64,000 bases of DNA, taken from assembly GCA_028826165.1 (NCBI GenBank), contig JAPDFW010000113.1:62001-126000 (forward strand). Direction: 5' to 3'. Of this stretch, positions 23,432 through 54,488 are shown piece after piece; position 1 is the stretch's first letter, and the number at the start of each line of letters is the position of its first letter. A program made the translations under genes and the position numbers. Source of the stretch: Anaeramoeba ignava BMAN. Lineage: Eukaryota; Protista; Anaeramoebae. Under the pieces are notes generated by a model, which saw only the letters and a list, made by a program, of their open reading frames with translations, was not told where the DNA came from and searched no databases.

Positions 23432-26400
23432 ATGCAAAATGAACAAATTTATTGGAAATTTTTATGTTTTCGAATTTCCAAAATTCCACTTGAAGAATCA
23501 CCATATATAAGTCCATGGAGACAATGGAAAAAATATAAAAGAATTCCTTTCAAATTCATATTACATATTTTTATTACAATACTTATTACTTATCAAGTTT
23601 AAAATTCAATTAAAAAATTCAATTAAAAATTCAATTAAAAAATTCAATTAAAATTTCAATTAAAAATTCAATTAAAATTCAATTAAAAAATTCAATTAAA
23701 AAAGGTTATTTTAATTACAAAATATCAAATACCTTATTTAAAACAAACTCAAGTATTTCTTTCTGGTGCTTTTTTACCGGATTCTGAAAGTTATCTTCCT
23801 GCAATGGATGGTTTTATTCACAAAGAAATATTTACAAATCAAGATTTTATTGATACTTTGAAAAGTGTTACTCAAACATATTATGGATTCTCAAATGATT
23901 CAATTGGTTTATTTGAGTAAATTAAATATTCAAATTAATTAATATTTAAATTAATAAATATTTAAATTAATTAATATTCAAATAAATAATATTTAAATCA
24001 ATTAATATTCAAAATAATATTTAAATTAATAAATATTCAAATCAATTAATATTTAAATTAATAAATATTTAAATTAATTAATATTTAAATTAATAAATAT
24101 TTAAATCAATTAATATTCAAATTAATTAATATTTAAATCAATAAATATCCAAATTAATTAATATTTAAATCAATAAATATTCAAATTAATTAATATTTAA
24201 ATTAATAAATATCCAAATTAATAAATATTTAAATTAATAAATCCAAATTAATTAATATTTAAAATAATATTTAAATTAATAAATATCCAAATTAATAAAT
24301 ATTTAAATCAATAAATATTTAAATCAATAAATATTTAAATTTAATAAATATTCAAATTAATAAATATTCAAATTAATAAATATTTAAATTAATTAATATT
24401 TAAAAATAATATTTAAATCAATAAATATCCAAATTAATTAATATTTAAAATATTTAAATTAATTAATAATAAATATTTAAATTAATTAATATTCAAATAA
24501 ATAAATATTTAAATAATATTTAAATCAATTAATATTCAAATTAATATTTAAATTAATTAATATTTAAAATAAATAAATATTTAAATTCAAGTTATAACAT
24601 TAATGAAGATAATCAAATTGAAGCACCAATTTTTACAATTGAAGAATTTACAAAAACTTCATTTGATGAAATAAAAATTGATCCTCAAAAAATTAATTAT
24701 GAAACAGATTTTGGTAAATAAATATTTTCAAAAGAAAGAAAAGAAGGATTTAAAAAAAAAATTGATTTAAAATTTATTCCAAAATATTTTTTCTAAATTT
24801 AGTTTCTTATCCACTTACTTTAAAACAACCATGTGGACCTTTTACAAATTTATCAAATGATGAAGTACAAAATTTATTTGCAAAATTTAGAACAGCTCAA
24901 ATCAGTTTTTCATTATTAAATTTATTTGTTTCAGAAATTGTTCAATGTGTTCAATGGAATGTTCTTGTAAATTTCTTTTTTTGATTCAATTGATTCCAAT
25001 TAATTTTTAAGAAACAAAACAACTGAATTTTTTTTTCATTTGAAAAATTATTTTAAAACAACAAAAAAAGATGTCTTTTAGTTTTGTTAGAAGAGGTGGA
25101 CGTTTATTATCAACAATTGATTTTTCTGTTACTTCTTGTGGAAATCAAGGTATTAAAATTAATATATTTTAAATATTTTAAATATTTTAAATATTTTCCA
25201 AAAATTTTTAAATATTTGATTCAATTAATTTTTTTAAAAAAAACAAAAAAGGAATTGGATTAAGTGATTTACTTCATACTGGCGAATTTTTTTCTGCATT
25301 TTTCTTGATTATTTTTTCATTTTTTAGCATGATAACTTCTATTAGACTTCTTTCTCAACAATATACACTTTATAAAGTTTATATCAATTAAATATTTAAA
25401 TTGAATATTTAAATTGAATTTTTAAATTAATTATTTATTTGTATTAGAATTTATCACAAAAAAAAGAAGAAACAAAACAAGTACAACGTCTTTTTAAATC
25501 AACAACTCAATTTAAAATAGCTTTTTTTGATTTTTGGCATGTTACAGCATTAATTGGTTCTGTTATTACAATTTTTGCTGAAGCTTTTTATATTTATAAT
25601 CAAGCACAAGGATTAAATCAAACACAAAATTTTTTTGCATTAATTTTTGCATTAGCTTCACTTTTTTCATGGGCTAATTTATCTGGGTAAAACAAAACAA
25701 ATTAAATTAAATTAAATCAAATATTTAAATTAAATTAAATTAAATTAAATTAAATTAAATCAAATCAAATTAAATCAAATTAAATTAAATCAAATTAAAT
25801 CAAATATTAAAATCAAATTAAATTAAATCAAATCAAATTAAATCAAATTAAATCAAATTAAATTAAATTAAATTAAATTAAATTAAATCAAATTAAATTA
25901 AATAAATTAAATTAAATTAAATTAAATCAAAATTTTTAAAAACAAAAAATTAAATTAAATCAAATCAACAAATTAAATTTAAATTAAATCAAATTTAAAT
26001 TAAATATTTAAATTAAATCAAAAATTAAATTAAATATTTAAATTTAAATCAAATTAAATCAAATTAAATTAAATCAAATTAAATCAAATTAAATTAAATC
26101 AAATTAAATTAAACAAAAAGAAAAATTAAATTAAATTAAATTAAATTAAAATAATTAAATCAAATTAAATTAAATTCAAATTAAATTAAATAAAAATTAA
26201 ATTCACAAATCAAATTAAATTAAATCAAATTAAATCAAATTAAAATCAAAAATTAAATTAAATCAAATCAAATTAAATCAAATTAAATTAAATTAAATCA
26301 AATTAAATTAAATTAAATTAAATTAAATTAAATTAAATTAAATTAAAATTAAATTAAATTAAATTAAATTAAATTAAATCTTAAAACAAAAATAAATTAA

Positions 26401-28691
26401 ATTAAATCAAAATCAAATTAAATTAAATATTTAAATTAAATCAAATTAAATTAAATATTTAAATTAAATTAAATTAAATTAAATTAAATTAAATTAAATT
26501 AAATTAAATAATATTTAAATTAAATCAAATTAAATTAAATCAAATTAAATTAAAATTAAATTAAATCAAATTAAATTAAATTAAATTAAATCAAATTAAA
26601 TTAAATTAAATTAAATTAAATCAAATTCAATTAAATTAAATTAAATTAAATTAAAATTAAATTAAATCAAATTAAATTAAATCAAATATTAAAATTAAAT
26701 TAAATCAAATTAAATTAAATTAAATTAAATCAAATTCAAATACAAAAAATTAAATTAAATCAAATTAAATATTTAAATTAAATTAAATCAAATTAAATTA
26801 AATCAAATCAAATTAAATCAAATTAAATTAAATTAAATCAAAATTAAATTAAATATTTAAATTAAATTAAATTAAATCAAATTAAATTAAATTAAATTAA
26901 ATTAAATCAAATTAAATTAAATTAAATTAAATTAAATTAAATTAAATTCAGTTATTTCCAATGGCACAAAAAATTTTATCTATTAATACTTACTTTAAGA
27001 AAAGCAATACCAAATTTACTTCGATTTTTAGCTGGAACATTTCCTTTATTCATTGGATATGCTTGTAAAAATTAATAATCAATTTCTAAATAATAATATT
27101 AAAAAGAAAAAGGAATTATTTTGGAAGATTAATTTGACTAAAAAGAACTAATTGGAATAATTTTCAAAATAAAATATATAAATATTTTAGATATGGGAAC
27201 TCTTTATTTTGGAAATTATTGTGAATATTTTGCTACAATTGATCAAGCTTGTGTTACTTTATTTGCAGTTTTAAATGGTGATGTTGTTAGAGATACTTTT
27301 AATTATCTTTATAGAAAAAATCATGGACTTGCAATATTTGCTCGAATTTATATGTATACTTTTACTTGTTTATTCATTTATGCGTAAGTATTTATTTTAA
27401 TATTTATTTTAATATTTATTTTAATATTTATTTTAATATTTATTTTAATATTTATTTTAATATTTATTTAAATTTATTTTAATTTTTATTTCAATTTTTA
27501 TTTTAATTTTTATTTCAATTTTTATTTCAATTTTTATTTTTAATATTTATTTTTATTCCACTTTTATTCCAATTTTATTTTAATTTTTATTTATTTTAAT
27601 TTATTTTAATATTTATTTTAATATTTATTTTAATATTTATTTTAATATTTATTTTAATATTTATTTTAATATTTATTTTAATATTTATTTTAATATTTAT
27701 TTTTAATTTTTTATTTATTTTTAATATTTATTTTAATATTTATTTTAATATTTATTTTAATATTTATTTTAATATTTATTTTAATATTTATTTTAATATT
27801 TATTTTAATTTTTATTTTAATTTTAATTTTATTTATTTTTATTTTTTAATATTTATTTTTTTATTTCAATTTTTTTAATATTTATTTTAATATTTATTTT
27901 TAATTTTATTTTTATTTTTAATATTTATTCCAAATTTTTATTCCAATATTTATTTTAATATTTATTTTTAATATTTATTTTTAATATTTATTTTAATATT
28001 TATTTTAATATTTATTTTAATTTATTTTAATATTTATTTTAATATTTATTTTAATATTTATTTTAATATTTATTTTAATTTATTTTAATATTTATTTTAA
28101 TATTTATTTTAATTTTTATTCCACTTTTTATTCCACTTTTTATTCCATTCCAATATTTATTTTAATATTTATTTTAATATTTATTTTAATATTTATTTTA
28201 ATATTTATTTTAATATTTATTTCAATATTTATTTTAATATTTATTTTAATATTTATTCCACTTTTTATTCCACTTTTTATTTCACTTTTTATTCCAATAT
28301 TTATTTTAATATTTATTTAAAAAGTTGGTTGAAATTATTTATCACACTTGTTGAATGTGCTTATTCTGCAGTTAAAGAAGCTCAAAAACCAGCTCATCTT
28401 GTTCAAAGAAAAACAATTAAAAAATTAGCATCAAGTGCAAATTTTGGAATTTCTTTCCCACAATCAGAATCTATGGTAACACCATTAACAACACCAGGAC
28501 TTTCAGAAAAATCAAAAGATCAAGAAGAAACACAAACTTCTTTAGATACTTTTTCATTTGATGAAAATGTAATTGAAATTTTATTTAATCCAAATTTTTA
28601 TTTCAAATTTTTATTTCAAATTTTATTTATTTAGGTTTTTGTTGATACTGATGGTGAACTTTCAAATGATGATGATCAAAAATCACAATAA
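23432..28691 (+). CDS. MCOLN: Mucolipin (TRPML) cation channel, multi-exon
   Basis: N-terminal SPWRQWKKYKRIPFKFILHI, GYFQWHKKFYLLILTLRKAIPNLLRF, pore LFAVLNGDVVRDTF, and S6 RIYMYTFTCLFIYAWLKLFITLVECAY. GT-AG introns throughout. Confidence 0.9.
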
Positions 28692-28827: not shown

Positions 28828-29838
28828 TTAATTTTGATTTTGATTTAAATTTTCATTTTGATTTCGATTTAAATTTTCATTTTGATTTTGATTTTCATTT
28901 AAATTTTCTTGTGAATCTTCTTGTAAATTTTCTTGTAAATTTTCTTGTAAATTTTCTTGTAAATTTTCTTGTAAATTTTCATTTAAATTTTCATTTAAAT
29001 TTTCTTGTAAATTTTCTTGTAAATTTTCTTGTAAATTTTCATTTAAATTTTCTTGTAAATTTTCATTTAAATTTTCTTGTAAATTTTCTTGTAAATTTTC
29101 TTGTAAATTTTCTTGTAAATTAAGATATTTTTCATATAAAAAAAGAGCACAAAGAGTTTTTCCATCAGAAGTTTCTTTCCAAACATCATTTAATTTAAGA
29201 ACACGAATGGAAATAAATTCACCTTCATGATGCAAACCAGTATTTTTTCCATTTAATTGAAGAATAGAAGAAGTAGGAAGAAAATGTTGATAAAGAAACA
29301 AACGAATAAAACCAGAACAAAGATCACAAGAAGGAATAATTCCTTTAAATTTTGATGAATAAAACAAAGAAGTGAGATCAACAAGATCACTTGTTTGAAC
29401 AATTAAACCAGTTTCTTCTTGCATTTCTCTAACAGCAACACTTTTGAATTGATTGGATGATTCAATTAATCCAGCAGGAATTTCAATAAATGATTCCAAA
29501 CCAATTGGTACTCTTGGTTGACTAGTTAAAATTACATATTTATCTTTTTCATCATAAAGAATAACTAAAATTGCTACTGCTCCTCCTCCTCCAAATACTG
29601 TTGTTTCTGTTGTTTCTCCAGTTTTTTTCATTTTTGTTGTTGATTTAAATTTTAAAAATCCAATTCTTGATCCAAAAAAATCAACTGATTCAATAACAAT
29701 TTTTTCAAGTTGAATTATTTCTGATTTTTGTATTTGTTTTATCCATTCAATAAAAAATTCACATTTTTTTAATTCTTCTATATCAATTTTAGTTGTTGAA
29801 TTTATTGGAATAACTTGATTTTGAACAATAATTTCCAT
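28828..29838 (-). CDS. Nudix hydrolase 14-like (ADP-sugar pyrophosphatase) with a (LQEN)n tail
   Basis: VDFFGSRIGFLKF, GGAVAIL, QPRVPIG..FIEIPAG, Nudix box AVREMQEETGL, TGLHHEGEFI and DGKTLCALFLY. Confidence 0.88.
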   Translation of the reverse strand: MEIIVQNQVIPINSTTKIDIEELKKCEFFIEWIKQIQKSEIIQLEKIVIESVDFFGSRIGFLKFKSTTKMKKTGETTETTVFGGGGAVAILVILYDEKDKYVILTSQPRVPIGLESFIEIPAGLIESSNQFKSVAVREMQEETGLIVQTSDLVDLTSLFYSSKFKGIIPSCDLCSGFIRLFLYQHFLPTSSILQLNGKNTGLHHEGEFISIRVLKLNDVWKETSDGKTLCALFLYEKYLNLQENLQENLQENLQENLNENLQENLNENLQENLQENLQENLNENLNENLQENLQENLQENLQENLQEDSQENLNENQNQNENLNRNQNENLNQNQN

Positions 29839-30075: not shown

Positions 30076-33000
30076 TCAATTCTTTTTAAATTGATCCATT
30101 TCTTTTGAATCAAATCCATCCAAAGCTTTTAATTGAAGATCAACCATTTTATCATTTTTTGGAGATGATTTTTGTTGTTGTTGTTGTTGTTGTAGTTGAA
30201 AATTTCGCAAAAATTCTTTTAAATCACGTGATTCAATTGAATGTTTTTTTGATAATTCATTTTTAATTTGTTCATGTAAAAATTTCATTCTTCTTTCTTC
30301 TTCTTGGAAAAAATTATCAAGAGTTATGAATTCGTCCTTTTGATTCTTTTCCAAATCTTGCAAAACGGAATCAACAGATTTTTGGATTGATTTGATTTTT
30401 TGTTCTTGTTTCAAAGAATTTGGCAATAATTTTTTATCGTTTCCATTTTTAGGATCTTGAGATTCAAGAAATTTTTGTTCATCCTGAATGTTAAGTGGAT
30501 TTTGATCATAAAATGAACTAAGATTTGGTGTATTTTTTTTGGCGAGAAGAAATTTGATAAATTCTTGAGTATTCAAAGATTTCCCAGAAAAATTCTTAAA
30601 TTCTTCTGAAACGGTTCTTCTTGGGAAAAATTTATTCGAATCATAAAAATGTGATTCTGTTGTGATTCCATTTAAATCAATATTTGGAATGTTATTTTTA
30701 TTAGGGTTCAAGTTTTCATTTGGATTGAAGTTTGCTCCGATAAAATTCGAATGTGAATATTCTTGAGGTTGATATTTTTTTTGATTTTGATTTTGATTTT
30801 GATTTTGGTTTTGATTTTGATTTTGATTTTGATTTTGATTTTCAATTTGATTTTCATTTTGTTTTTCATTTTGTTTTTGTTTTTGTTTTTCATAAAAATA
30901 TCGATTTTCAGAATTCATTCGATACGATTCAGTCTCACCATCATCACTATTTGATTCCGAATCATCCGTTAAATCTTGTTCAACATCTTGTTCTCCATCT
31001 GGTTCTGATGAAACGTCTGATTCATGCTCTAATTCATAATTTTGGATCAAATCTTTTAATGGATCAAATTTGGATGATTTTTGTCCTAAAATTGTGTCAA
31101 TTAAATCATTTGGTTCTGAATATTGAAGAACTAAATCGCTCTTTAAAAGTTGGTTTTTTCGTTCTTGTTCTTTCAGGAATCGCTGCTTCTTTTCGTTTTC
31201 TTTTTTTTGTCTTTTTTCGTTTTCTTTTCTTTCTCGTTCTTTTCTTTGCTCATATTTTTTTTGTTGTTCAAGCGTTCTTAGTTTTTCTTTTGTGTGATTG
31301 GATTGCTTTTTTTGTAGTTGTTCATCTTGACTTAATTCTTTTTTTAGTTCGCTTTCTTTTTGTTGTTTTGGTTGTTGTTGTTTTTTGATTGAGTTAACTA
31401 ATTAAAAAAAAAAAGGTGAAAAAAAAACTGTCAAAAAAAAATATTTTTTGCGAACTTTTTAAAAAAAAAATTATTTTTTTACCCATTTTTTGTATGTTTG
31501 TTGAGATTTCTTTAGGATCATAATTTGGAATTTGAAGTTCTTCTATCATTTCTTTAGCAACAAGATCAGGTGAATCATTTTGAATATCAAATTCAAATTC
31601 CACTTCATATGGACTATCATTAACAAAAACTTTTAATTTCAAAGAAACTTTTTGACTAACATTATTAATTGAATCAATCAATGAAACTTCACTTAATGCT
31701 TTTGAAAGAGAATTTTTGTGATCATTTTGTAAAATATTCTTTTCAATTTGATTTTGATTTTCTATTTGATTTTCTATTTTATTTTCTATTTGATTTTCTA
31801 TTTGATTTTGATTTTGATTTTGATTTTGATTTTCTATTTGATTTTGATTTTGATTTTGATTTTGATTTTGATTTTGATTTTGATTTTGATTTTGATTTTG
31901 ATTTTGATTTTGATTTTGATTTTCAATTTGATTTTCAATTTGATTTTCAATTTGATTTTGATTTTCAATTTGATTTTCTTGATTATTTTCTTGATTATTT
32001 TCACTTGTTGTTTCATTTGTATCTGATTCTTGTGAATTTTGAGATGAATTTTGAGATGAACTTTGTTTTGGTTGCTGTTGAAGTACTTGAGTAAGAAATG
32101 GATCGTCAGCAAGTTCTTTAGCTGTTGGTCTTTGCTCAATAAGAGAAATACATCTTTTTATAAAATTTGCTGCAAGTGTGTTTTTTAATCTTGATAATGA
32201 TGGTGGAGGTAATTTCTTTTTTACATTTTTAATTTTGAATTTTTAAATTGATTTTAAATTGATTTTGATTTTAAATTGATTTTTTACAAATAATATTTTT
32301 TTAAGTATTTGAGCTCTATTTTCACATTCATAATATGGAGGTTTTGTTTGTATCATTTCTAGAACACACATTCCAAGAGCATAAATATCTATTTTTTCTG
32401 AACATTTATTATCATATAATTCAGGTGACATAAATTCAGGAGTTGCTATTTTGTTTTTGATTTTTTGTTTGGAAATTGATTTAAATTGATTTAAAAATTG
32501 ATTTAGAAATTGATTTAAAAATTGATTTAAAAATTGATTTAAAAATTGATTTAAAAATTGATTTAAAAATTAATTTAAAAATTGATTTAAAAATTGATTT
32601 AAAAATTGATTTAAAAATTGATTTAAAATTGATTTAGAAATTGATTTAAAATTGATTTAAAAATTGATTTAAAAATTAATTTAAAAATTGATTTAAAAAT
32701 TGATTTAGAAATTGATTTAAAAATTGATTTAAAAATTGATTTAAAAATTAATTTAAAAATTGATTTAAAAATTGATTTAAAAATTGATTTAAAAATTGAT
32801 TTAAAAATTGATTTAAAAATTGATTTAAAAATTAATTGATTTAAAAATTGATTTAAAAATTGATTTAAAAATTGATTTAAAAATTGATTTAAAATTGATT
32901 TAAAAATTGATTTAAAATTGATTTAAAAAATTGATTTAAAAATTGATTTAAAATTGATTTAAAAATTGATTTAAAAATTAAAATTGATAGAAATTGATTT

Positions 33001-34070
33001 AAAAATTGATTTAAAAATTGATTAATTTAAAAATTGATTTAAAAATTGATTTAAAAATTGATTTAAAAATTGATTTAAAAAAATTGATTTAAAAATTGAT
33101 TTAAAAAGATTTAAAAAATTTAAAATTGATTGATTTAAAAATTGATTTTTTAGAAATTGATTTAAAATTGATTTAAAAATTGATTTAAAATTGATTTAAA
33201 AATTGATTTAAAAATTGATTTAAAATTGATTTAAAAATTGATTTAAAAATTGATTTAGAAATTGATTTAAAAATTGATTTAAAAATTGATTTAGAAATTG
33301 ATTTAAAAATTGATTTAAAAATTGATTTAAAAATTGATTTAAAAATTGATTTAAAAATTGATTTAAAAATTGATTTAAAAATTGATTTAAAAATTGAATT
33401 AAAAATTGATTTAAAAATTAATAAACCAATATAATCTTGAGGATGCATTGCTGATAAACCAAGATCACCAATTTTAACAGAGCCATCAGCACCATTAACA
33501 AAAATATGATTAGTAGTCAAATGCATGAAAACAACAGGAGAAGGAAGTTGATGTAAAAAAGCCAAAGCTTCTAAAATTTGTTGAGTCCATTTTTGAATAA
33601 CTCGAAAATCTAAAGTTTTTGCTCTTTTTATATACTTCCTAAGTGTACCTGATTGCATGAATTCTGTTATAAAAACAAGCACCTTTTTCTGTTCATCGTA
33701 CCAACAATCAAAAAGATGTACTATTCTTTTGTGTTGAATTGATTTCATTGAATTTGCTCTTTTTATTAATTTTTTCGCTTTTTTTCGTGTTAGTTTATCC
33801 CTCTTCACTTGTTTCCATGCAACTTCAATACCTTCTTCCTGATCGAGCGCATAATATATTGTTATTTGGTCTGTTTTATAAAGTATTTTTGAGTACTAAC
33901 ATAAAAAGAAGGAATTAATCAAGAAAGAAAGAGAATTTATTTTTTTTAATTGATTTTTTTAATTGATTTTTTTAAATTGATTTTTTTTAATTTGGTTTTG
34001 TTGTCTTTCATACTCTAATGTATTTCCCGTTTGTTTCTACTTTATGAACTGAATCTTTATTATGATTCAT
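30076..34070 (-). CDS. WNK/NRBP-family kinase-like protein (probable pseudokinase) with a CCT/OSR1_C-like domain
   Basis: GKYIRY, ALDQEEGIEVAW, FITEFMQSGTLRKY, IFVNGADGSVKIGDLGL, TPEFMSPELY, DIYALGMCVLEM, PYYECEN and VEFEFDIQNDSPDLVAKEMIEEL. Five exons. Confidence 0.85.
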
Positions 34071-37825: not shown

Positions 37826-40800
37826 TTATTTTTTTATATTTTCAAAAGATTTCCATAAATTTTTTGGATAACGAACAAATCCAAATTCAAAAATATAAGT
37901 TCCATATAAAAATTTGCATTTGTTAACTAAAGAAAGAGAATTAAAAGGATTAGAACTTTTACGAACAAATTTTTCTTTTTCTATTCCTCTTTTCGGATTT
38001 TTGATAAGTTTATTAAAATCTGTTTCAATAAATCCATTTATAAACCCATTATCATTTTCATTTTGATTTTCAATTTGATTTCGATTTTGATTTAGATTTA
38101 GATTTTGATTTTGATTTATATTTTGATTTTGATTTTGATTTTCATTTTGATTTTGATTTTGATTTTGATTTTGATTTTGATTTTGATTTTGATTTTGATT
38201 TTGATTTTGATTTTGATTTTGATTTATATTTTCATTTTGATTTTGATTTTGATTTTGATTTTCAATTTGAATTTTATTTTCATTTTGATTTTGATTTTGA
38301 TTTTGATTTTGATTTTGATTTTGATTTTGATTTTTATTTTCATTTTGATTTTCATTTTGATTTTCATTTTTATTTTGATTTTGATTTTCAATTTGATTTT
38401 GATTTTGATTTTGATTTTCATTTTCATTTTCATTTTCATTTTGATTTTGATTTTGATTTTGATTTTTATTTTGATTTTGATTTTCATTTTGATTTTGATT
38501 TTGATTTTGATTTTGATTTTCATTTTGATTTTTAATTTCAATTTCATTTTGATTTTGATTTTGATTTTGATTTTGATTTTCATTTTGATTTTGATTTTTA
38601 TTTTGATTTTGATTTTGATTTTGATTTTCATTTTTAATTTGATTTTGATTTTTATTTTGATTTTGATTTTTATTTTGATTTTCATTTTCATTTTGATTTT
38701 GATTTTGATTTTTATTTTGATTTTGATTTTGATTTTGATTTTGATTTAGATTTTCATTTTGATTTTGATTTTGATTTTCAATTTGATTTTGATTTTGATT
38801 TTCAATTTGATTTTGATTTTCATTTTCATTTTCATTTTGATTTTGATTTTCATTTTGATTTTCAATTTGATTTTGATTTTCAATTTCATTTTGATTTTGA
38901 TTTTGATTTTGATTTTCAATTTCATTTTTAATTTGATTTTGATTTTCAATTTCATTTTTAATTTCATTTTCATTTTCATTTTCATTTTCATTTTTATTTT
39001 CAATTTTATTTTTATTTTCAATTTTATTTTCATTTTCATTTTCATTTTTAATTTCAATTTTATTTGTATTTGCTTCTTCTTTATCTAAATCAAATCCAAA
39101 TTGTAAGCAAGAAAGATAAAACAAATAAGCACTATCAACTTGTTGCAAATCCATTAAACATTGAAAAACTTTATAAAAATAACCAATCATTAAATAAAGT
39201 TCGATAGCTTTTTGATAATTTTTTTTTGTAATTAAATGATTAGCATAATTTTCAAAAAATTTTCGACTTTTCTCAAAAGATAAATGATATTTTGCAATTT
39301 GACAAGAATAGTTCCATTTATGAACATTTTGGAGTAATTCACAAGCATATTCATATAAACCAACAGAACATAAAAGTTCAGCACCATCAAAATAATTATT
39401 ATTTTCAATTAAATTTGTGCCAATAATTTTGATTGTTTGAATATATGCTTCTTTTGATATTTGAACTGAAAATGTTGTTGCAAAAAGCATATTTCTGAAA
39501 AAATTTGGATCATTAACTGGTGTTTTCATAAGTATTTCTAATCCCTTTTCTCGCTCATTTATTAGACTATAATTTTTTACAATCTCTCGGAAATGTGGAT
39601 TTCCATTTTCAAGAATTTTTGAATGAATGTTGGCTGTTTGAAGTTTTTCTCTAGTTAAAATTTCTTGATTTTGAAATAATCCCAAATTTGAAGATAATTG
39701 GAATTTGTGTTCTTGTTTTGAATGAGAAAAATAATCATCTTGAATAAAATTTTCATCTTCATTTTTAATTTCAATTTCATTTTTAATTTCATTTTCAATT
39801 TCATTTTCAATTTCAATTTCATTTTCATTTTGATTTAAATTTTGATTTAAATTTTGATTTGAAAAATGTTGAAGAAAACGAAGAACTAATTTCCAAAATC
39901 TTTCTTCTTTTGAATCTCCAAATATTATTGAAGTGGCAATACATAATTCAGGAAAATTTTGACAATTTTCAATTTGTTTCTTTTTTTTCCTGGAAAAGGA
40001 ATCAATTAATTTAATCAAATTCATTTCATCCAAATTATCACTATCTCTTAAAAGGAAGAATTCATTTTGATTAAAATTTGTTGGTTGTTTATCATAAATT
40101 TTAAGTCCATGTTGAAAAGCAACTTTTAGTTGAGAAAATAATTTTGGAGAAAGTAAATATGGATTTTCTGTTGGAATTGGAGGATTCTCAGAATTAATAA
40201 TTTTGTTTAAAATTGCTAATTTTTTATTTAAAATTCTTAAACATCCATCACTACACACTATTTTTAAAATTAAAAAAAAAAGAAAAAGAAAATGTTTTAA
40301 ATTTTTAACTGAAATTTTCAAATTGAATTTAAATTTTATACAAGCAATAAGTGAATGATCTGAAATCCAATCGATATATTCAATTTTATAATTCAAATCC
40401 AATTTGGAATTATTTAAATATGTTTTTTTCAATAATGTTAAATCAGCAATCATTAATCCTCCATCATTAAATAAAATTAAAAATTTTAAAGATTGTTCAT
40501 TTGGTGATAATTGAATTTGCTTAATTTTATTTGATCCAACAGAAAAGTTGGTTTTTTTTGGTTCTGGATAATTTATAACACAAAATAATTGACCTGAATC
40601 ATTCCCAAATATTAAAAGACTTTTAATAAAAAAAGATTAATATTAAAAAATTTTTATCCAATTTTTGTTTTTGTTTAAATTACGAATTATTTTGAGCTAT
40701 ACAACTCAATTTAGTCATTGGTTTTAAAAATTGAATTGCATTTAAAGTTGAAATCATTCGATCTTTAATTTCCATCATAATTCCAATTGCTATCAAAAAA

Positions 40801-43507: not shown

Positions 43508-43601
43508 TTAAAAATTGTTTTAATAAAAATTCAATAAAAAAAAACAAACAAAACAAAAAAAATAGGAAAAATGAAAAAAATGAAAAAAATGAAAAAATGA
43601 A

Positions 43602-44010
43602 AATGTATTTAATTTAATATTTAATTTATAAATTAATTTAAAAATATAATTTAATATTTAATTTTATTATTAAAATAATAATTTAATGTTTTAGATTTAA
43701 ATATTTTATTATTTAAATATTTAACATATAAATATAAAAAATGAGAATGTATTTAATTTAATATTCAATTTATAAATTAATTTAAAAATATAATTTAATA
43801 TTTAATTTTATTATTAAAATAATAATTTAATGTTTTAGATTTAAATATTTTATTATTTAAATATTTAACATATAAATATAAAAATAAGAATAGATTTAAT
43901 TTAATATTTAATTTATAAATTAATTTAAAAATATAATTTAATATTTAATTCCATTATTAAAATAATAATTTATTGTTTTAGATTTAAATATTTTATTATT
44001 TAAAAATATT
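43602..44010 (+). repeat. ~144-bp AT-rich tandem repeat, about 2.8 copies, upstream of the BTB-TLDc gene
   Basis: Unit ...AATGTATTTAATTTAATATTTAATTTATAAATT...TGTTTTAGATTTAAATATTTTATTATTTAAA starts at ~43602, ~43746 and ~43889. Confidence 0.85.
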
Positions 44011-44406: not shown

Positions 44407-47400
44407 ATGGATAATAATAATCAAAATGAAAATGCAAATCAAAATCAAAATCAAAATGAAAATGAAAAATTTAGAAAAAAAAGTAACAAAAAATTTAATT
44501 AAAGATTATTCAAACCTTTTAAATGGAAATTCATTTAAAGATTTTTCAATTTTTGTTGAGAAAGAATCAAATCCTTTTGAAATTAAAGTTCATAAATCAA
44601 TTTTATCTTCAAGATCTCCTTTTTTTAATGAATCATTAAGGCAAGAATCTCTTTCTATTTCTTTAAATCAATTTAATAAAAAAGAAATGGAATCAATTTT
44701 GAGTTATATTTATTATGGAAATATTTCTTTTGAGAATCAAGAAAATCTTATTCAATTATTGGAAATTTCAATTTATTTTAAATTAAATTTATTGAAAGAA
44801 ATTATTCAAAAAAAAATTTTAAATTCAATTAATTATTCAAATTTTTTCCAATTTTTATTCCAAAATCGAAATTTAAATTCAAATGAAATTGAAATAAAAT
44901 GTTTTGAATTAATAAATCAAAATTTTTCCCAAATTCAAAATAATGAGAATTTATTCAATTTAACTAAAGAAGAAATTATCAAATTTATTCAATTTAAACA
45001 AGAAAAAAAAGAAATTTTTCAATTTGATTTTTTTCAATTTTTGGATAATTGGATTGAAAAAGAAATAAAAATTAAAAGGAAAAAGAAAAAGAAAAGGAAA
45101 GAAAGAAAAAGAAAAAGAAAAAGAAAAAGAAATTGAAAAGGAAATTGGAATTGAAAAGAAAAGATTATTTCATTCTTTTTTTTCATTATTTGATAAAGAT
45201 TCAATTTCAAAACAAGATTTTGATAAGTTAAAACAATTTGATATTTTTCTTCCAAATTCTTTTTTAATTGATATTGAAAGAACTATTTTTGAAATTCAAG
45301 ATCAAGAAAATCAAACAAGAATCAAAGAAAAAGATAAGAAAATTAAAAGAAGAGATAAAAGAATCAAAGAAAAAGATAAAAAAATCAAGTCATTTGAATC
45401 TGAAACTCAAAATTTGAAAAATGAAAATGAAAAGAAAGAAAAAGAAGTTGAAGATAAAAACAAAGAGATTGAAAAAATGAAACCTGTTTTTGATAAATAT
45501 CAAGAACAATATCAACAATATTTAGAATATGAATTGAAAAAGAAATTAGAAGAAATCAAAAAGAATTTCCCACAATTTTCAAATTCAAAAATAATTCAAG
45601 ATATTGAATATGTTAAGAAATTACAAGAATGGATAAATGATAATAAATTCTTTTCTAAAATAAAAAAAGGATTTTCAGCAAAAAAAGATGGATTTGATTC
45701 TCAAAAATTGCATTCAAAATGTGATAATAAAGGAAAAACATTAGTTATTATCAAAACAAAAGATAATTTTATTTTTGGAGGTTTTACTCAAGTTGGATTT
45801 ACAAATGATAAATCAAAATGGAGTGAAAAAGATACAAAATATGATTGGGGATTTATTCCAGATTCAAATGCATTTATTTTTTCATTAAGAAATGATAAAG
45901 GAGATAGAAAACCAGAGAAGTTTACAATTAAACAAGGAGAAGAAAAATATGCAATTTTTTATCATTTAAATTATGGTCCAACTTTTGGTGGAAGTAAATA
46001 TAAATAATTTATATTTAATAAATATTTATTATTAATATAATTAAAATTAAATTAATAAATAATCCAAAATATTAATATAATAAATAATAATATTATTTCA
46101 ATTTAAAATAAAATAAATTTTAAATTAAATTATTATTAATTATTATTAAAATTAATTATTTATTTTTATTAAAATAGAACGTAAATAATTTATATTTAAT
46201 AAATATTTATTATTATAATTAAAATTAAATTAATAAATAATCCAAAATATTAATATAATAAATAATATTATTATTTATTTAAAATTTAAAATAAAATTAA
46301 TTATTAATTATTATTAATTATTATAAAATTAATTATTTATCTTTATTAAAATAGTTGGTAAATAATATATATTTAACAAATATTTATTATTATTATTAAA
46401 AATTAAAATTAATAAATAATTCAAAATATTAATATAATAAATAATATTATTATTTTAAATTTAAAAATAAAATTAATTTTAAAATTAAATTATTTATTAA
46501 TTATTAAATTAAAATTAATTATTTATCTTTATTAAAATAGGTGGTAAATAATTTTATATTTAATAAATATTTATTATTATAATTAAAATTAAATTAATAA
46601 ATAATCAAAAATATTAATATAATAAATAATATTATTATTTCAATTTAAAATAAAATTAATTTTAAATTAAATTATTATTAATTATTATTAAAATTAATTA
46701 TTTATTTTTATTAAAAATAGAACGTAAATAATTTATATTTAATAAATATTTATTATTATAATTAAAATTAAATTTAAAATGAAAATAATCCAAAAATATT
46801 AATATAATAAATAATATTATTATTTAAATTTAAAATAAAATTAATTTTAAATTAAATTATTATTAAATATTATTAAAATTAATTATTTATCTTTATTAAA
46901 ATAGTTGGTAAATAATTTATATTTAACAAATATTTATTATTTATAATTAAAAATTAAATTAATAAATAATCTAAAATATTAATATAATAAATAATATTAT
47001 TATTTAAAATTTAAAATAAAATTAATTTTAAATTAAATTATTTATTAATTATTATTAAAATTAATTATTTATTTTTATTAAAATATTATTTTGTAAAATA
47101 ATTTATATTTTAACAATTATTTATTATTATAATTAAAATTAAATTAATAAATAATCCAGAAAATATTAATATAATAAATAATATTATTATTTCAATTTAA
47201 AATAAAAATTAATTTTAAAATTAAAATTATTATTAATTATTATTAAAATTTAATTATTTATTTTTATTAAAATAGATTGTAAATAATTTATATTTAATAA
47301 ATAATTATTATTATAATTAAAATTAAAATTAATAAATAATCAAAAATATTAATATAATAAATAATATTATTATTTAAATTTAAAATAAAATTAATTTTAA

Positions 47401-47803
47401 ATTAAATTATTATTAATTATTATTAAAATTAATTATTTATATTTATTAAAATAGCTTGTAAATAATTTATATTTAATAAATAATTATTATTATAATTAAA
47501 TTTAAATTAATAAATAATCAAAAATATTAATATAATAAATAATATTATTATTTCAATTTAAAATAAAAATTAATTTTAAATTAAATTATTATTAATTATT
47601 ATTAAAATTAATTATTTATCTTTATTAAAATATTTATAGTTGATATTAGTCTATATTCTAGTTTACAATCTGGTTATTCAAATTTTGGTCAAAGTTATAA
47701 TCTACCTAATGGAATTAAAGAAGAAACAGATGAAGTTCAAAGTTATTTAGCTGGTTCTTGGAATAAATGGGAAGTTGATGAACTTGAATCTTATTTCATT
47801 TAA
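44407..47803 (+). CDS. BTB/POZ + coiled-coil + TLDc domain protein (two frameshifts in A-runs: assembly error or pseudogene)
   Basis: BTB: KDFSIFV...IKVHKSILSSRSPFF...ILSYIYYG. TLDc: FSAKKDGFDSQKLHSKCDNKGKTLVIIKTKDNFIFGGFT, AFIFSLRN, GPTFGG. Last exon 47640-47803 DISL...SYLAGSWNKWEVDELESYFI*. Frameshifts near 44465 and 45070-45130. Confidence 0.82.
45994..47639 (+). repeat. Tandem array of nine ~180-bp GT-AG intron units separated by variable 3-nt spacers (putative microexons)
   Basis: Units start GTAAATA at 45994, 46181, 46358, 46544, 46724, 46908, 47093 (variant GTAAAATA), 47279 and 47458; most end TTATTAAAATAG. Spacers are AAC, TTG, GTG, AAC, TTG, (degenerate), ATT and CTT. Confidence 0.9.
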
Positions 47804-48747: not shown

Positions 48748-51458
48748 ATGAAATTAATTCTTTTCTTTTCCTTTTTCTTAATTATTAATATTTTCTTAAT
48801 TCAATCAAACCAAAATCATCAACAACCAATATCAACATTAATATCAAAAATATTAACAGAAACACAAACAACAAGATATTATTCTTCTTTCGATGAAGCT
48901 TGGATTTGGAATTTATTAGATCAATTTTCAGGTTCAGGATATTTTGGAAGTTCTGTTTCAATTTATAAAGAGGTTCTTGTTATTGGATATTATGATGGAA
49001 AAACAGCATATGTTTACAGATATAATGGAACAAATTTTGAACTTGAACAAACTTTGAATGAACCTTCAGCTCCAAATTTTGGATATTCTGTTTCAGTTTA
49101 TGAAGATGTTATTGTTATTGGAGCTTATTATCCAAAAAAAGCATTTATTTACAGATATAATGGAACAATTTGGAATCTTGAACAAACTTTGAATCAATCA
49201 GCTACATATTTTGGATGTAGTGTTTCAATTTATGAGAATGTTACTGTTATTGGAGCTGATGGTGCAAATCAAGCATTTATTTACAGATATAATGGAACAA
49301 TTTGGAATCTTGAACAAACTTTTAATGAATCAGTTCAATCTTTTGGAGAAAGTGTTTCAATTTATGAGAATGTTACTGTTATTGGAGGTGATATAGCAAA
49401 TCAAGCATATGTTTACAGATATAATGGAACATTTTGGAATCTTGAACAAATTTTGAATGAATCAGTTCAATATTTTGGATGGAGTGTTTCAATTTATGAA
49501 GATGTTATTGTTATTGGAACTTACGATTCAATTCAAGTATATGTTTACAGATATAATGGAGCAAATTTTGAACTTGAACAAACTTTGAGTGTATCAACTG
49601 CAGCTTTCGGATATTCTGTTTCAATTTATGAGAATGTTATTGTTATTGGCGCTTATAAATCAAAAAAAGCATATGTTTACAGATATAATGGAACATTTTG
49701 GAATCAAGAACAAACATTGAATGAATCAGCTTTATATTTTGGTTATTCTGTTTCAAATTATGGGAATTTTACTGCTATAGGAAATAATGGTGCAAAGAAA
49801 GTATTTGTTTATGAAGCAAATTTAATTCCTCAAGTTAATATTGTTAATTGTTCTTCTTTGTTTTCATCATTTGATTGTTATTGGGATGAAATTCAAATTC
49901 CAAATTTGGTTTATCAAATCAATTATGGATATGATTGGATTGATATTGATTCTCCAATTCTTGAAGATGGGAATGTTTATTATCAACAATTTAATTCTTC
50001 AATTTATGATAATATTACAGGAAATGAATATTATTCAATTCAAATTCAAGCTTGCGATAATGAAACATCAATGAAATGTGGTGAATCTTCTTCTTTGGTT
50101 AATTTAACAACAAAAATTGATTCTGTAAAAGATTTTCAATTATCAAATCCTTCAAATTATTCAATTAATGTTACATGGAATTATCCAAATGTGCAGATCA
50201 ATGGAGGAATTGCTCATCTTAATCATTATAATCTTTCTTATTTAAATCAATCTCAACCTGATTTAATATCTTTCATTTCAGTTGATAATTCTTCACTTGA
50301 TTATTTTTGAATAATTTAGAATGTGGAAATGATTATAATATTTCAATTTGTGGATGTAGAACGCAAGAATGTGAAGGAGAAGATAAAGGAGAAATTGTTG
50401 AATCATCAATTTCATTAATATTTGGAGAAGTTACAGATTTTTCATGTTCAATTTCAAATTCAATCGATCTTAATTGTAATTGGAATCAACCAATTAATTG
50501 TTCAATTCCATTTTATTATAATTTAACTTATCAATCAATTTATCAAAATGATTCAGGAAATTATCAACCAACATTATCAAATCAACAATTTACAGTTCAA
50601 TTTCCAAATCAAGAATATCAAATCAATGTATCAGCATGCAATTCAAATGGAAAATGTGGATATATTTCAACAATTTCAATTACAACTGATAATTTAACTT
50701 CTCCAATAATTTATGAAACAATTTCCAAAATTGAAGAAATTGAATTTAATTTCACAAAATTAACAAATGCAAACAATTATTCAATTTCACTTGATAATGA
50801 AACAAATTGGGAAAAATTCACATCTCTTGATTTAAGTGGAAATGAAATAATTGGAACCATAAGTGAAATATCAGGAAATATTGAATATAATATTTCAATT
50901 CGAGGATGTGTTGATTTAAATTGTGAAACACCATATTTAGGATTACCTAGTTTAATTAATTCAACAAAAGCTAAATTAGGAAATATTACTTCATTAAATT
51001 GTAATTCATTAATTAATGGATTTGTTTGTAGTTGGGATTCATTAAATTTATCAAGTGGATTAAAAGGATATTCATTTACTTACAATTCAATTTCAATTTG
51101 TTTATCAACTTTAACAACAAATTATTCAATTTCAGGATTAAATGGAGGAGAATATTATGAAATTTCAATTTATTCATCAGCTGATTTAAATTGTTCATTT
51201 AATGAATATTCAGGAATTAATTCAACAACATCAATTACAACATTATCAACAAATGAATCTAATGATAATTCAAAAACAACAGCAATAACTTTAGGAATAA
51301 TTATTCCTATTATTGTTATTTCAGCTATTATTATTGGAATTATTTTATACAAAAAGAAAAAATCAAAATCAAATTCAAAATCAAACTCAAAATCAAAATC
51401 AAAATCAAAATCAAAAAACAAAGAAGAAAAAGAACTTCATAATGATTTGGATATTTAA
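48748..51458 (+). CDS. Type I membrane protein: signal peptide, 7-blade FG-GAP-like beta-propeller, FN3-like stalk, TM, basic tail (paralog A; 1-nt frameshift at ~50305)
   Basis: Seven ~44-aa FGxSVSIYExVxVIGA...YRYNG repeats, FN3-like W/Y patterns, and TM AITLGIIIPIIVISAIIIGIILY. ORFs 48748-50310 and 50307-51458 together align to paralog B; the T-run has 5 T here versus 6 T in B. Confidence 0.85.
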
Positions 51459-51788
51459 TTCCAATTCAATTTTAAATTCCAAATTTCCATTTCAAATTCA
51501 TTTTTCTTTTTTCTTTCTAAAAATTCAAAATAACAATAATAAAAAATTAAAAATTCAAAATTAATTTTTAATAATATTTAGTCATTTTTCTTTCTTTTTC
51601 TTTTCAATTCAAAAAAAAATTTTTGTTTTCTCACTTTTTTAATTAAAAAAAATTTAATCATTTTTTTTCTTTTTAATTTCAACAAGCAAAAGTAAGAAAA
51701 ATAAAATTTGAAATAAACAACACACAAACATAAACTTATTTTAATTATTTTAACTTTATTTTTATTTAAATAAATCCAAATAGCCAAA

Positions 51789-54488
51789 ATGAAATTAATT
51801 CTTTTCTTTTCCTTTTTCTTAATTATTAATATTTTCTTAATTCAATCAAATCAAAATCAACAACAACCAATATCAACATTAATATCAAAAATATTAACAG
51901 AAACACAAACAACAAGATATTATTCTTCTTTCGATGAAGCTTGGATTTGGAATTTATTAGATCAATTTTCAGGTTCAGGAAATTTTGGATGGAGTGTTTC
52001 AATTTATAAAGAGGTTCTTGTTATTGGAGATTATGATGGAAGAAAAGCATATGTTTACAGATATAATGGAGCAAATTTTGAACTTGAACAAACTTTGAAT
52101 GGACCAACTTCAATATTTGGATGGGATGCTTCAGTTTATGAAGATGTTATTGTTATTAGCGATTCTTATTCAAAAAGAGCATATATTTACAGATATAATG
52201 TAACAATTTGGAATCTTGAACAAACTTTGAGTGATTCAGCTTCAAATTTTGGATGTAGTGTTTCAATTTATGAGAATGTTACTGTTATTGGAGCTGATAG
52301 TGCAAATCAAGCATTTATTTACAGATATAATGGATCATTTTGGAATCTTGAACAAACATTGAGTGATTCAGCTTCATCTTTTGGATGTAGTGTTTCAATT
52401 TATGAGAATGTTACTGTTATTGGAGCTAGTGGTGCAAATCAAGCATTTATTTACAGATATAATGGAGCAATTTGGAATCTTGAACAAACATTGAGTGATT
52501 CAGCTTCATCTTTTGGAAAAAGTGTTTCAATTTATGAAGATGTTACTGTTATTGGGGCTAGTGGTGAAAATCAAGCATTTATTTACAGATATAATGGAAC
52601 ATTTTGGAATGAAGAACAAATTTTGAGTGTATCAGCTTCAGATTTTGGAGAAAGTGTTTCAATTTATGAGAATGTTATTATTATTGGCGCTTATGGTGCA
52701 AATCAAGCATTTATTTACAGATATAATGGAACATTTTGGAATCAAGAAAAAACATTGAATCAATCAGCTTCATATTTTGGTTATTCTGTTTCAAATTATG
52801 GGAATTTTACTGCTATTGGAGCTTATAATGCAAGGAGAGTATTTGTTTATGAAGTTAGTTTCATTTCTCAAGTTAATATTGTTAATTGTTCTTCTTTGTT
52901 TTCATCATTTGATTGTTATTGGGATGAAATTCAAATTCCAAATTTGGTTTATCAAATCAATTATGGATATGATTGGATTGATATTGATTCTCCAATTCTT
53001 GAAGATGGAAATGTTTATTATCAATTATTTAATTCTTCATTTTATGATAATATTACAGGAAATGAATATTATTCAATTCAAATTCAAGCTTGCGATAATG
53101 CATCAATGAAATGTGGTGAATCTTCTTCTTTGGTTAATTTAACAACAAAAATTGATTCTGTAAAAGATTTTCAATTATTCAATCCTACAAATTATTCAAT
53201 TAATGTTACATGGAATTATCCAAATGTGCAGATCAATGGAGGAATTGCTCATCTTAATCATTATAATCTTTCTTATTTAAATCAATCTCAACCTAATTTA
53301 ATATCTTTCATTTCAGTTGATAATTCTTCACTTGATTATTTTTTGAATAATTTAGAATGTGGAAATGATTATAATATTTCAATTTGTGGATGTAGAACGC
53401 AAGAATGTGAAGGAGAAGATAAAGGAGAAATTGTTGAATCATCAATTTCATTAATATTTGGAGAAGTTACAGATTTTTCATGTTCAATTTCAAATTCAAT
53501 AGATCTTAATTGTAATTGGAATCAACCAATTAATTGTTCAATTCCATTTTATTATAATTTGACTTATCAATCTATTTATCAAAATGATTCTGGAAATTAT
53601 CAACCAACATTATCAAATCAACAATTAACAGTTCAATTTCCAAATCAAGAGTATCAAATCAATGTATCAGCATGTAATTCAAATGATAAATGTGGAGATA
53701 TTTCAACAATTTCAATTACAACTGATAATTTAACTTCTCCAACAATTTATGAAACAATTTCCAAAATTGAAGAAATTGAATTTAATTTCACAAAATTAAC
53801 AAATGCAAACAATTATTCAATTTCACTTGATAATGAAACAAATTGGGAAAAATTCACATCTCTTGATTTAAGTGGAAATGAAATAATTGGAACCATAAGT
53901 GGAATATCAGGAAATATTGAATATAATATTTCAATTCGAGGATGTGTAGATTTAAATTGTGAAATACCATATTTAGGATTACCTAGTTTAATTAATTCAA
54001 CAAAAGCTAAATTAGGAAATATTACTTCATTAAATTGTAATTCATTAATTAATGGATTTGTTTGTAGTTGGAATTCATTAAATTTATCAAGTGGATTAAA
54101 AGGATATTCATTTACTTACAATTCAATTTCAATTTGTTTATCAACTTCAACAACAAATTATTCAGTTTCAGGATTAAATGGAGGAGAATATTATGAAATT
54201 TCAATTTATTCATCAGCTGATTTAAATTGTTCATTTAATGAATATTCAGGAATTAATTCAACAACATCAATTACAACATTATCAACAAATGAATCTAATG
54301 ATAATTCAAAAACAACAGCAATAACTTTAGGAATAATTATTCCTATTATTGTTATTTCAGCTATTATTATTGGAATTATTTTATACAAAAAGAAAAAATC
54401 AAAATCAAAATCAAATTCGAAATCAAAATCAAAATCAAAATCAAAAAACAAAGAAGAAAAAGAACTTCATAATGATTTGGATATTTAA
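51789..54488 (+). CDS. Type I membrane FG-GAP propeller/FN3 protein (paralog B, intact 899 aa)
   Basis: Single intact ORF with the same architecture as paralog A. Part of a ~3.04-kb tandem duplication that includes the flanks. Confidence 0.9.
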   Translation: MKLILFFSFFLIINIFLIQSNQNQQQPISTLISKILTETQTTRYYSSFDEAWIWNLLDQFSGSGNFGWSVSIYKEVLVIGDYDGRKAYVYRYNGANFELEQTLNGPTSIFGWDASVYEDVIVISDSYSKRAYIYRYNVTIWNLEQTLSDSASNFGCSVSIYENVTVIGADSANQAFIYRYNGSFWNLEQTLSDSASSFGCSVSIYENVTVIGASGANQAFIYRYNGAIWNLEQTLSDSASSFGKSVSIYEDVTVIGASGENQAFIYRYNGTFWNEEQILSVSASDFGESVSIYENVIIIGAYGANQAFIYRYNGTFWNQEKTLNQSASYFGYSVSNYGNFTAIGAYNARRVFVYEVSFISQVNIVNCSSLFSSFDCYWDEIQIPNLVYQINYGYDWIDIDSPILEDGNVYYQLFNSSFYDNITGNEYYSIQIQACDNASMKCGESSSLVNLTTKIDSVKDFQLFNPTNYSINVTWNYPNVQINGGIAHLNHYNLSYLNQSQPNLISFISVDNSSLDYFLNNLECGNDYNISICGCRTQECEGEDKGEIVESSISLIFGEVTDFSCSISNSIDLNCNWNQPINCSIPFYYNLTYQSIYQNDSGNYQPTLSNQQLTVQFPNQEYQINVSACNSNDKCGDISTISITTDNLTSPTIYETISKIEEIEFNFTKLTNANNYSISLDNETNWEKFTSLDLSGNEIIGTISGISGNIEYNISIRGCVDLNCEIPYLGLPSLINSTKAKLGNITSLNCNSLINGFVCSWNSLNLSSGLKGYSFTYNSISICLSTSTTNYSVSGLNGGEYYEISIYSSADLNCSFNEYSGINSTTSITTLSTNESNDNSKTTAITLGIIIPIIVISAIIIGIILYKKKKSKSKSNSKSKSKSKSKNKEEKELHNDLDI

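Follow-up and report, generated by a model that had tools for sequence, protein, structure and literature searches.

Introduction

Arthropod Dscam1 produces alternative binding loops from one gene by means of tandemly duplicated exon–intron units, whose exons (~100–300 nt) are strictly mutually exclusive through RNA docking sites. OXR1, NCOA7, TBC1D24 and mEAK7, which share the TLDc fold, are single-copy V-ATPase binders. The micro-exon genes (MEGs) of Schistosoma encode secreted, largely disordered proteins from exons mostly of 15 bp (6–81) separated by long unrelated introns, and their variation is attributed to alternative splicing (PMC10526429). In the HNWD repeats of Podospora, diversifying selection acts on a few positions of the binding surface, and the repeats evolve in concert (PMC1805685). 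Exons of 1–3 nt can be spliced, as precedents from plants and animals attest, among them the 1-nt exon of APC11; such microexons are routinely missed by annotation (PMC4674806, PMC8831610).

Here, we describe an array of 3-nt candidate exons in a BTB–TLDc gene of Anaeramoeba ignava that combines MEG-like frame-preserving micro-exons with concerted evolution of the HNWD type, yet belongs to neither group. Like the MEGs (PMC10526429), it contains runs of very short frame-preserving exons, with lengths in multiples of three, in a duplicated and diversifying family; unlike them, it has exons of 3 nt throughout, homogenised copies of one intron and codons split in phase 1, and it occupies a single loop of a folded cytosolic domain. 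MEG membership was rejected, since a MEG protein is encoded mostly by 10–20 micro-exons and secreted with a signal peptide, whereas this protein is not secreted and is built mainly of two long exons rather than of micro-exons. With the HNWD/NWD WD40 repeats (PMC1805685) it shares homogenisation within and between loci, hypervariable positions and variable copy number. The Podospora repeat codes for 42 residues, whereas in A. ignava what is homogenised is an intron and what varies is a single codon, so that splicing would add a second level. An HNWD-type assignment was likewise discarded, the unit being an intron plus 3 nt in a BTB–TLDc gene and not a coding WD40 repeat in an NLR. No docking sites of the Dscam1 kind were seen in the arrays. 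Whereas plant and animal microexons are isolated and conserved, those of A. ignava are hypervariable and stand in arrays of up to dozens, and in contrast to the TLDc proteins named above the A. ignava TLDc domain is fused to BTB, is present in more than 150 copies and is hypervariable in one region. A search of the literature outside subscription journals found no description of such arrays, and the genome papers of A. ignava, A. pumila and the ciliates do not mention them.

Gene and array structure

The window, by which we mean the whole 64-kb stretch of DNA analysed, contains a BTB–TLDc paralog of A. ignava on the forward strand at 44407–47803 (GenBank model P0018). Its two long exons code for about 580 residues, with an N/Q-rich N-terminus followed by the BTB domain. 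Exon 1 matches PF00651 (1.6e-13) and PF07534 (5.5e-17), and its BACK match is weak. Alignment with the intronless paralog L059 placed two frame breaks in simple repeats of exon 1 of this copy (~44459 and 45057–45130), which reflect either long-read errors or decay. The features of the gene are as follows.

44407–45993, +, exon 1: BTB(+BACK), coiled coil and first two thirds of TLDc; ends with GPTFGG plus one base, phase 1
45994–46177, +, intron 1: 184 nt; first-donor variant distinctive for the family
46178–46180, +, microexon AAC, exact AG-NNN-GT
46181–46354, +, intron 2: 174 nt
46355–46357, +, microexon TTG, exact AG-NNN-GT
46358–46540, +, intron 3: 183 nt
46541–46543, +, microexon GTG, exact AG-NNN-GT
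46544–46720, +, intron 4: 177 nt
46721–46723, +, microexon AAC, exact AG-NNN-GT
46724–46904, +, intron 5: 181 nt
46905–46907, +, microexon TTG, exact AG-NNN-GT
46908–47275, +, units 6 and 7: 182 + 3 + 183 nt; junction 47090–47092 (TTT) without acceptor AG
47276–47278, +, microexon ATT, exact AG-NNN-GT
47279–47454, +, intron 8: 176 nt; 851 genome matches
47455–47457, +, microexon CTT, exact AG-NNN-GT
47458–47639, +, last intron: 182 nt; terminal acceptor distinctive for the family
47640–47803, +, last exon: opens with the two bases that finish the split codon and continues from DISL to the stop codon; encodes the C-terminal third of TLDc

The original prediction had divided the region between GPTFGG and DISL into nine intron-shaped units of 177–187 nt, joined by seven exact AG-NNN-GT junctions with the triplets AAC, TTG, GTG, AAC, TTG, ATT and CTT and an eighth (about 47085–47092) lacking AG, all introns being in phase 1. 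The introns measure 174–184 nt without the triplet, and the triplet of the eighth junction is TTT. Lengths, positions and phase proved to be correct, as did the translations KLGELDSF with every triplet included and I with every triplet skipped. Because the acceptor AG between them is lost, units 6 and 7 probably act as one intron. The introns are 97% A+T, with 0.07% G outside the splice dinucleotides, and the 64-kb window holds no further AG-NNN-GT junctions of this kind. It had also been proposed that no subset of triplets creates a stop owing to the order of the spacers. The first part stands, in that none of the 128 ordered subsets (112 distinct peptides) contains a stop; spacer order is weak as the cause (within-array shuffle, P ~0.11–0.13), and the main guard is instead T at the wobble position.

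Elsewhere in the window, a 144-nt three-copy repeat (43592–44004) lies upstream of the BTB–TLDc gene, and two tandem paralogs (48748–54488, +) encode a secreted FG-GAP propeller and fibronectin type III membrane protein, the first of which is interrupted near 50307 by a frame break. NRPS-like ORFs (AMP-binding, PP-binding, Condensation) with a PH domain at the end occupy 15053–21918 (−) in a stretch of 36–39% G+C and are a candidate for lateral transfer. A NUDIX hydrolase (28828–29838, −) and a WDR11 TPR-domain gene (37826–40453, −) are ordinary. Long A/T minisatellites with 5–12-nt periods (6585–8267, 12868–14060, 22152–23169, 25699–26948 and 32473–33419) are probably intronic or intergenic.

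Distribution in the A. ignava genome

The A. ignava assembly (42.8 Mb, 147 contigs) was made with Nanopore, Racon, Nanopolish and Pilon (PMC11550330). It contains at least 150 paralogs of exon 1, one locus among the paralogs being identical to a GenBank protein of A. ignava, and the array layout is present in dozens of genes. Sixty loci were examined with 1.5-kb flanks, so that the array lengths found there are lower bounds. The 29 closest other loci comprise 25 with an intron at the same phase-1 site and four that are intronless; 24 of the 25 hold at least one microexon, and up to 28 intact junctions occur in the loci examined. A genome search for the AG-NNN-GT junction, as the original prediction had suggested, returned 379 exact junctions compared with one in a reversed control. 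The same flanks enclose 2 nt seven times, 4 nt 15 times and 0 or 1 nt never, and 379 of ~410 junctions are 3 nt long. We rejected constant length as proof in itself, as ~6% of junctions carry a 1-nt indel, which is like the level of indels between units. Broken junctions and 2- or 4-nt spacers occur and are tolerated, although the odd-length spacers may instead be nanopore errors.

The GenBank models of all matched array genes have a single intron from first donor to last acceptor, which says little because any pipeline would treat 3-nt exons in this way. Protein database searches found no transcript-derived junction proteins from A. ignava or rumen ciliates, and a tree of the TLDc parts of exon 1 was too poorly resolved to speak for or against a single origin of the arrays. 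In two loci, L043 and L051, the last exon opens with an additional ATT or GTT that immediately follows an acceptor of the internal type; this could be a microexon fused to the last exon through precise intron loss, a fossil of inclusion, or could have arisen by recombination with an intronless paralog.

Intron 8 matches 851 places in the genome, with 95–98% identity among the 150 matches listed. A near-identical unit is thus found genome-wide, yet in all 29 loci examined it stands in tandem at one homologous site; the arrays are not clearly Introners. Divergence among paralogs is 2.7% for the intron unit and 11% for the adjoining coding exon (shuffled control 25%), which implies either exchange of units among loci or strong constraint. 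In a cluster on contig C1 the units have shrunk to 53–160 nt through internal deletions, with the last 25 nt kept in 97–100% and the donor in every unit parsed, a pattern that indicates selection on the splice signals. The triplets are flanked by AG and GT and by intron-like bodies of viable length (minimum unit 53 nt). Two young C1 neighbours, whose exons are 1.9% apart and whose introns are in register, differ in three of 16 triplets, and GGG and ATG are swapped between units 2 and 6, either by patch conversion or by a polishing mix-up. Reshuffling of the array at the DNA level, which had been proposed from the recurrence of AAC and TTG in the window, is well supported. Since the last exon of array genes always starts with N-T-G, the array would most simply have originated by tandem duplication of an intron together with the 3 nt at the start of that exon. 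One unit that was folded forms only an A/U-rich hairpin (no shuffle control), with no distinct docking or selector element. Recursive splice sites, in which AG is followed directly by GT, were also sought; among the seven matches of a search for spacers of 0–2 nt none was of 0 or 1 nt, and recursive splicing was ruled out given the absence of zero-length exons.

Coding signature of the triplets

Within arrays, intron bodies differ at 1.4–1.9% of sites, whereas spacer positions 1 and 3 differ in 61–66% of unit pairs; even for units whose introns are only 0.4% apart the figure is 65%. Position 2, which is the wobble base in phase 1, differs in 9–16% of pairs. Among 208 spacers, all four bases are found at positions 1 and 3, while position 2 is T in 180 (87%), G in 23, A in five and never C; the two outer positions together contain C 40 times (P 8e-8, for units that are not independent). 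A change from T to C at position 2 would always be silent and was never found, whereas T to G was found and opens Trp, Lys, Glu and Met. Genome-wide, the middle base is other than T in 72 of 379 junctions, 52 of these having G. The share of G is 0.07% in the intron body compared with 41% at spacer position 3. The triplet set is NNK-like, with stops rare, and the codons reachable from the arrays are led by Tyr (23%), Asp (20%), Asn (9%), Val (8%) and Phe (7%).

Array site in the TLDc domain

Both the BTB/POZ and the TLDc domain score above the Pfam cut-off, and the TLDc fold is supported by a structure model built from a natural intronless paralog (P0001, pLDDT 89), the exons being searched separately. 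The model matches the TLDc structures of NCOA7, Skywalker, OXR2, mEAK7 and Oxr1 (Foldseek E 3e-8 to 3e-5). Mapping the insertion onto it bore out the expected position, the array site falling in a loop between two strands (model residues 138–146) that aligns with the glycine-rich IGGGEG of Skywalker. In a comparison of 146 paralogs, variability within the domain is greatest in this loop and at alternate residues of the strands on either side of it, between an invariant G-P-x-F-G and D; loop length ranges over 1–10 residues (mode 3), with a richness in G, N, S and Y. Such a pattern is suggestive of a diversifying binding surface. From the BTB–BACK architecture, the protein may bind Cullin3 and recruit substrates, and domain architecture and variation pattern together hint at variable-target recognition for Cullin3-dependent ubiquitination.

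A second array family and arrays in rumen ciliates

A generic search in A/T context gave 1263 3-nt and 358 4-nt junctions, the reversed control being uninformative at such looseness. A second family with a different acceptor context was recovered with 220 junctions (control 0). Its units are ~72–107 nt long and number up to roughly 47–60 per array, in arrays such as the following.

C1, 409307–412861
C57, 593648–597556
C87, 271575–275697
C137, 610785–615042

These triplets read as whole sense codons, with A or T as third base in 98 of the 100 listed and no stop; the constrained base therefore moves with the presumed frame, the phase having been deduced from the triplets themselves. Each array has its own residue theme, for instance hydrophobic on C87 and K/D/S/P on C57. 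A search with an ankyrin family did not identify the host of this second family.

The exact A. ignava unit junction is absent from metagenomes. A looser pattern of two tandem junctions matched 49 metagenomic loci, and 47 of them were dismissed as ordinary minisatellites. L100 and L098 are contigs of 14% G+C in which a kinase + B-box gene is followed by 3-nt exons between introns of 20–30 nt. L100, L110 and L112 end in CCCCAAT, the telomere of rumen ciliates (bioRxiv 2022.01.05.474053). Homologues number 39, and most of the called ORFs end at or just past the first intron. L100, L110, L112, L113–L115 and L116 each have a 1-nt exon and, after it, exons of one codon that together read C-x-x-C-x-Y-Q/E-F-W-K-G; the three genes that are complete continue with 22–27 variable middle units and then with I-C-x-D-x-x-x-C-PK-C-G. 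The zinc-ribbon arrays lie at the following positions, with the same layout in L112 and L114–L116.

L100, 1761–3112
L110, 1536–3012
L113, 2993–4325

The C-terminal zinc ribbon is distributed over ~45–50 consecutive exons of 1–6 nt between introns of 20–30 nt. Two zinc knuckles conserved at one codon per exon can be accounted for only by splicing that retains long runs of 3-nt exons. The middles contain 17 broken junctions and the flanks one (P 2e-5), and the middle units therefore look dispensable. As neither the introns nor the host genes nor the lineages are related to those of the Anaeramoeba arrays, the likeness is one of convergence in layout. L098, whose contig is without a telomere, has a related kinase + B-box gene with a different 3-nt array (1574–2622); its triplets include TAA and TGA in phase 0 and are open in phase 2, the phase of the first donor.

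Functional interpretation

Frame-tracking variation, recurrence across the family, retention of splice signals in shrunken units and the independent ciliate case together uphold two parts of the original proposal, that the variable TLDc loop is encoded by microexons and that arrays are reshuffled at the DNA level; it is highly probable that the triplets are coding. We favour, with modest confidence, the fuller reading in which the array consists of functional single-codon exons whose variable subsets in transcripts diversify a surface loop of BTB (Cullin3-adaptor-type) TLDc proteins. The sequence itself establishes the layout, its spread through the family, the coding signature, the position in the loop and change at the DNA level, whereas microexon splicing, choice of subsets and a role in target recognition are what we infer here from the DNA. 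Each A/T-rich unit would be recognised singly by intron definition and removed in turn, sequential splicing joining the 3-nt exons. Near-identical acceptors and donors would compete, so that some donors may pair with a later acceptor and microexons be skipped. Each one kept would add a residue and, in phase 1, alter its neighbour, and T (or G) at the wobble base would keep nearly all combinations free of stops. The cloned introns may serve as recombination handles, unequal crossover changing copy number and patch gene conversion moving triplets within and between genes, with selection maintaining diversity at spacer positions 1 and 3; the role in target recognition might be immune-like or one of quality control.

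Subset splicing is favoured because joining all of 15–28 or more units exceeds every natural paralog loop, because some junctions are broken and at least one pair of neighbours forms a stop (AAT then AAC on C35, if all units are joined) and because any two neighbours are protected by the wobble rule. Loop length, broken junctions and the stop-forming pair count against a reading that we regard as less probable but still deserving of weight, namely that all microexons are constitutively included and diversity is generated at the DNA level only, with the introns as 60–180-bp homology handles (HNWD/PRDM9-like, at one-codon resolution): such inclusion would give loops of 16–30 residues, absent among ~150 paralog models, and second-family arrays run to about 47–60 units. 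Subset splicing is weakened by the GenBank models, which join first donor to last acceptor in all matched array genes. Other points speak for constitutive inclusion. Intron definition normally favours the nearest acceptor; stops arise in none of 208 adjacent pairs (2.7 expected after cross-array shuffling, P 0.035) against six of 1343 arbitrary ordered pairs, counts that are not independent as the units are related by duplication; and the ciliate middles are similar in length, which is compatible with full inclusion, as the ciliate flanks must be. Complete arrays are open in frame throughout, the young C1 paralogs have exchanged GGG and ATG, and the loop of the gene in the window would then have nine residues, inside the natural range. 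Selection of one microexon, or of a fixed small number, per transcript in the mutually exclusive manner of Dscam seems improbable to us. It would produce loops of 2–3 residues, which is the family mode, the themed residue sets of the second family resemble a library for a single position, and direct joining to exon 1 creates a stop for two of 208 spacers; but no docking or selector structure was seen, there is no evident block to joining two microexons, and the repertoires would be highly redundant, with 8–9 distinct outcomes per 15–28 units.

We think it distinctly unlikely that the triplets never enter mRNA, either because a single long intron contains the array as a satellite or because removal is stepwise, in a recursive-type manner. 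A/T satellites are abundant in the genome, first donor and last acceptor are distinct and conserved, and skipping every triplet yields a valid short loop in agreement with the GenBank annotation; confinement of variation to non-synonymous bases, the way in which it follows the frame in different families, G/C-rich triplets in a G-free unit and the spelling of zinc knuckles in ciliates would all go unexplained. An artefact of assembly or polishing is very improbable, even though nanopore reads and Pilon were applied to repeats, many indels separate the units and exon 1 of the window copy has two frame breaks, the last of which also weakens our preferred reading. Errors would not strike two fixed positions across hundreds of units, the same layout occurs where other projects have assembled other organisms (L100, L110–L116), and polishing could scramble only the assignment of triplets to units.

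A broader form of the preferred reading, on which we are evenly divided, is that Anaeramoeba, with at least two unit families, and the rumen ciliates have converged on a codon-resolution library generator in which stochastic single-codon exons build CDR3-like loops. These loops would be rich in Tyr, Asp, Asn and Phe, would be kept free of stops by an NNK-like wobble rule and would belong to intracellular binders tied to ubiquitin-ligase adaptors or kinases.

Even if all microexons are always included, which is the most conservative reading compatible with the data, each such gene has 3-nt exons in unbroken runs of tens, which are missed by current exon-recognition models and by all annotation pipelines, and the deposited A. 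ignava gene models drop them. If inclusion is variable, a 28-unit gene could yield more than 12,000 distinct loops from five-exon subsets alone, and a single-celled eukaryote would possess anticipatory receptor diversification, assembled one codon at a time. If true, this would bear on adaptive-like recognition of symbionts, viruses or effectors in protists.
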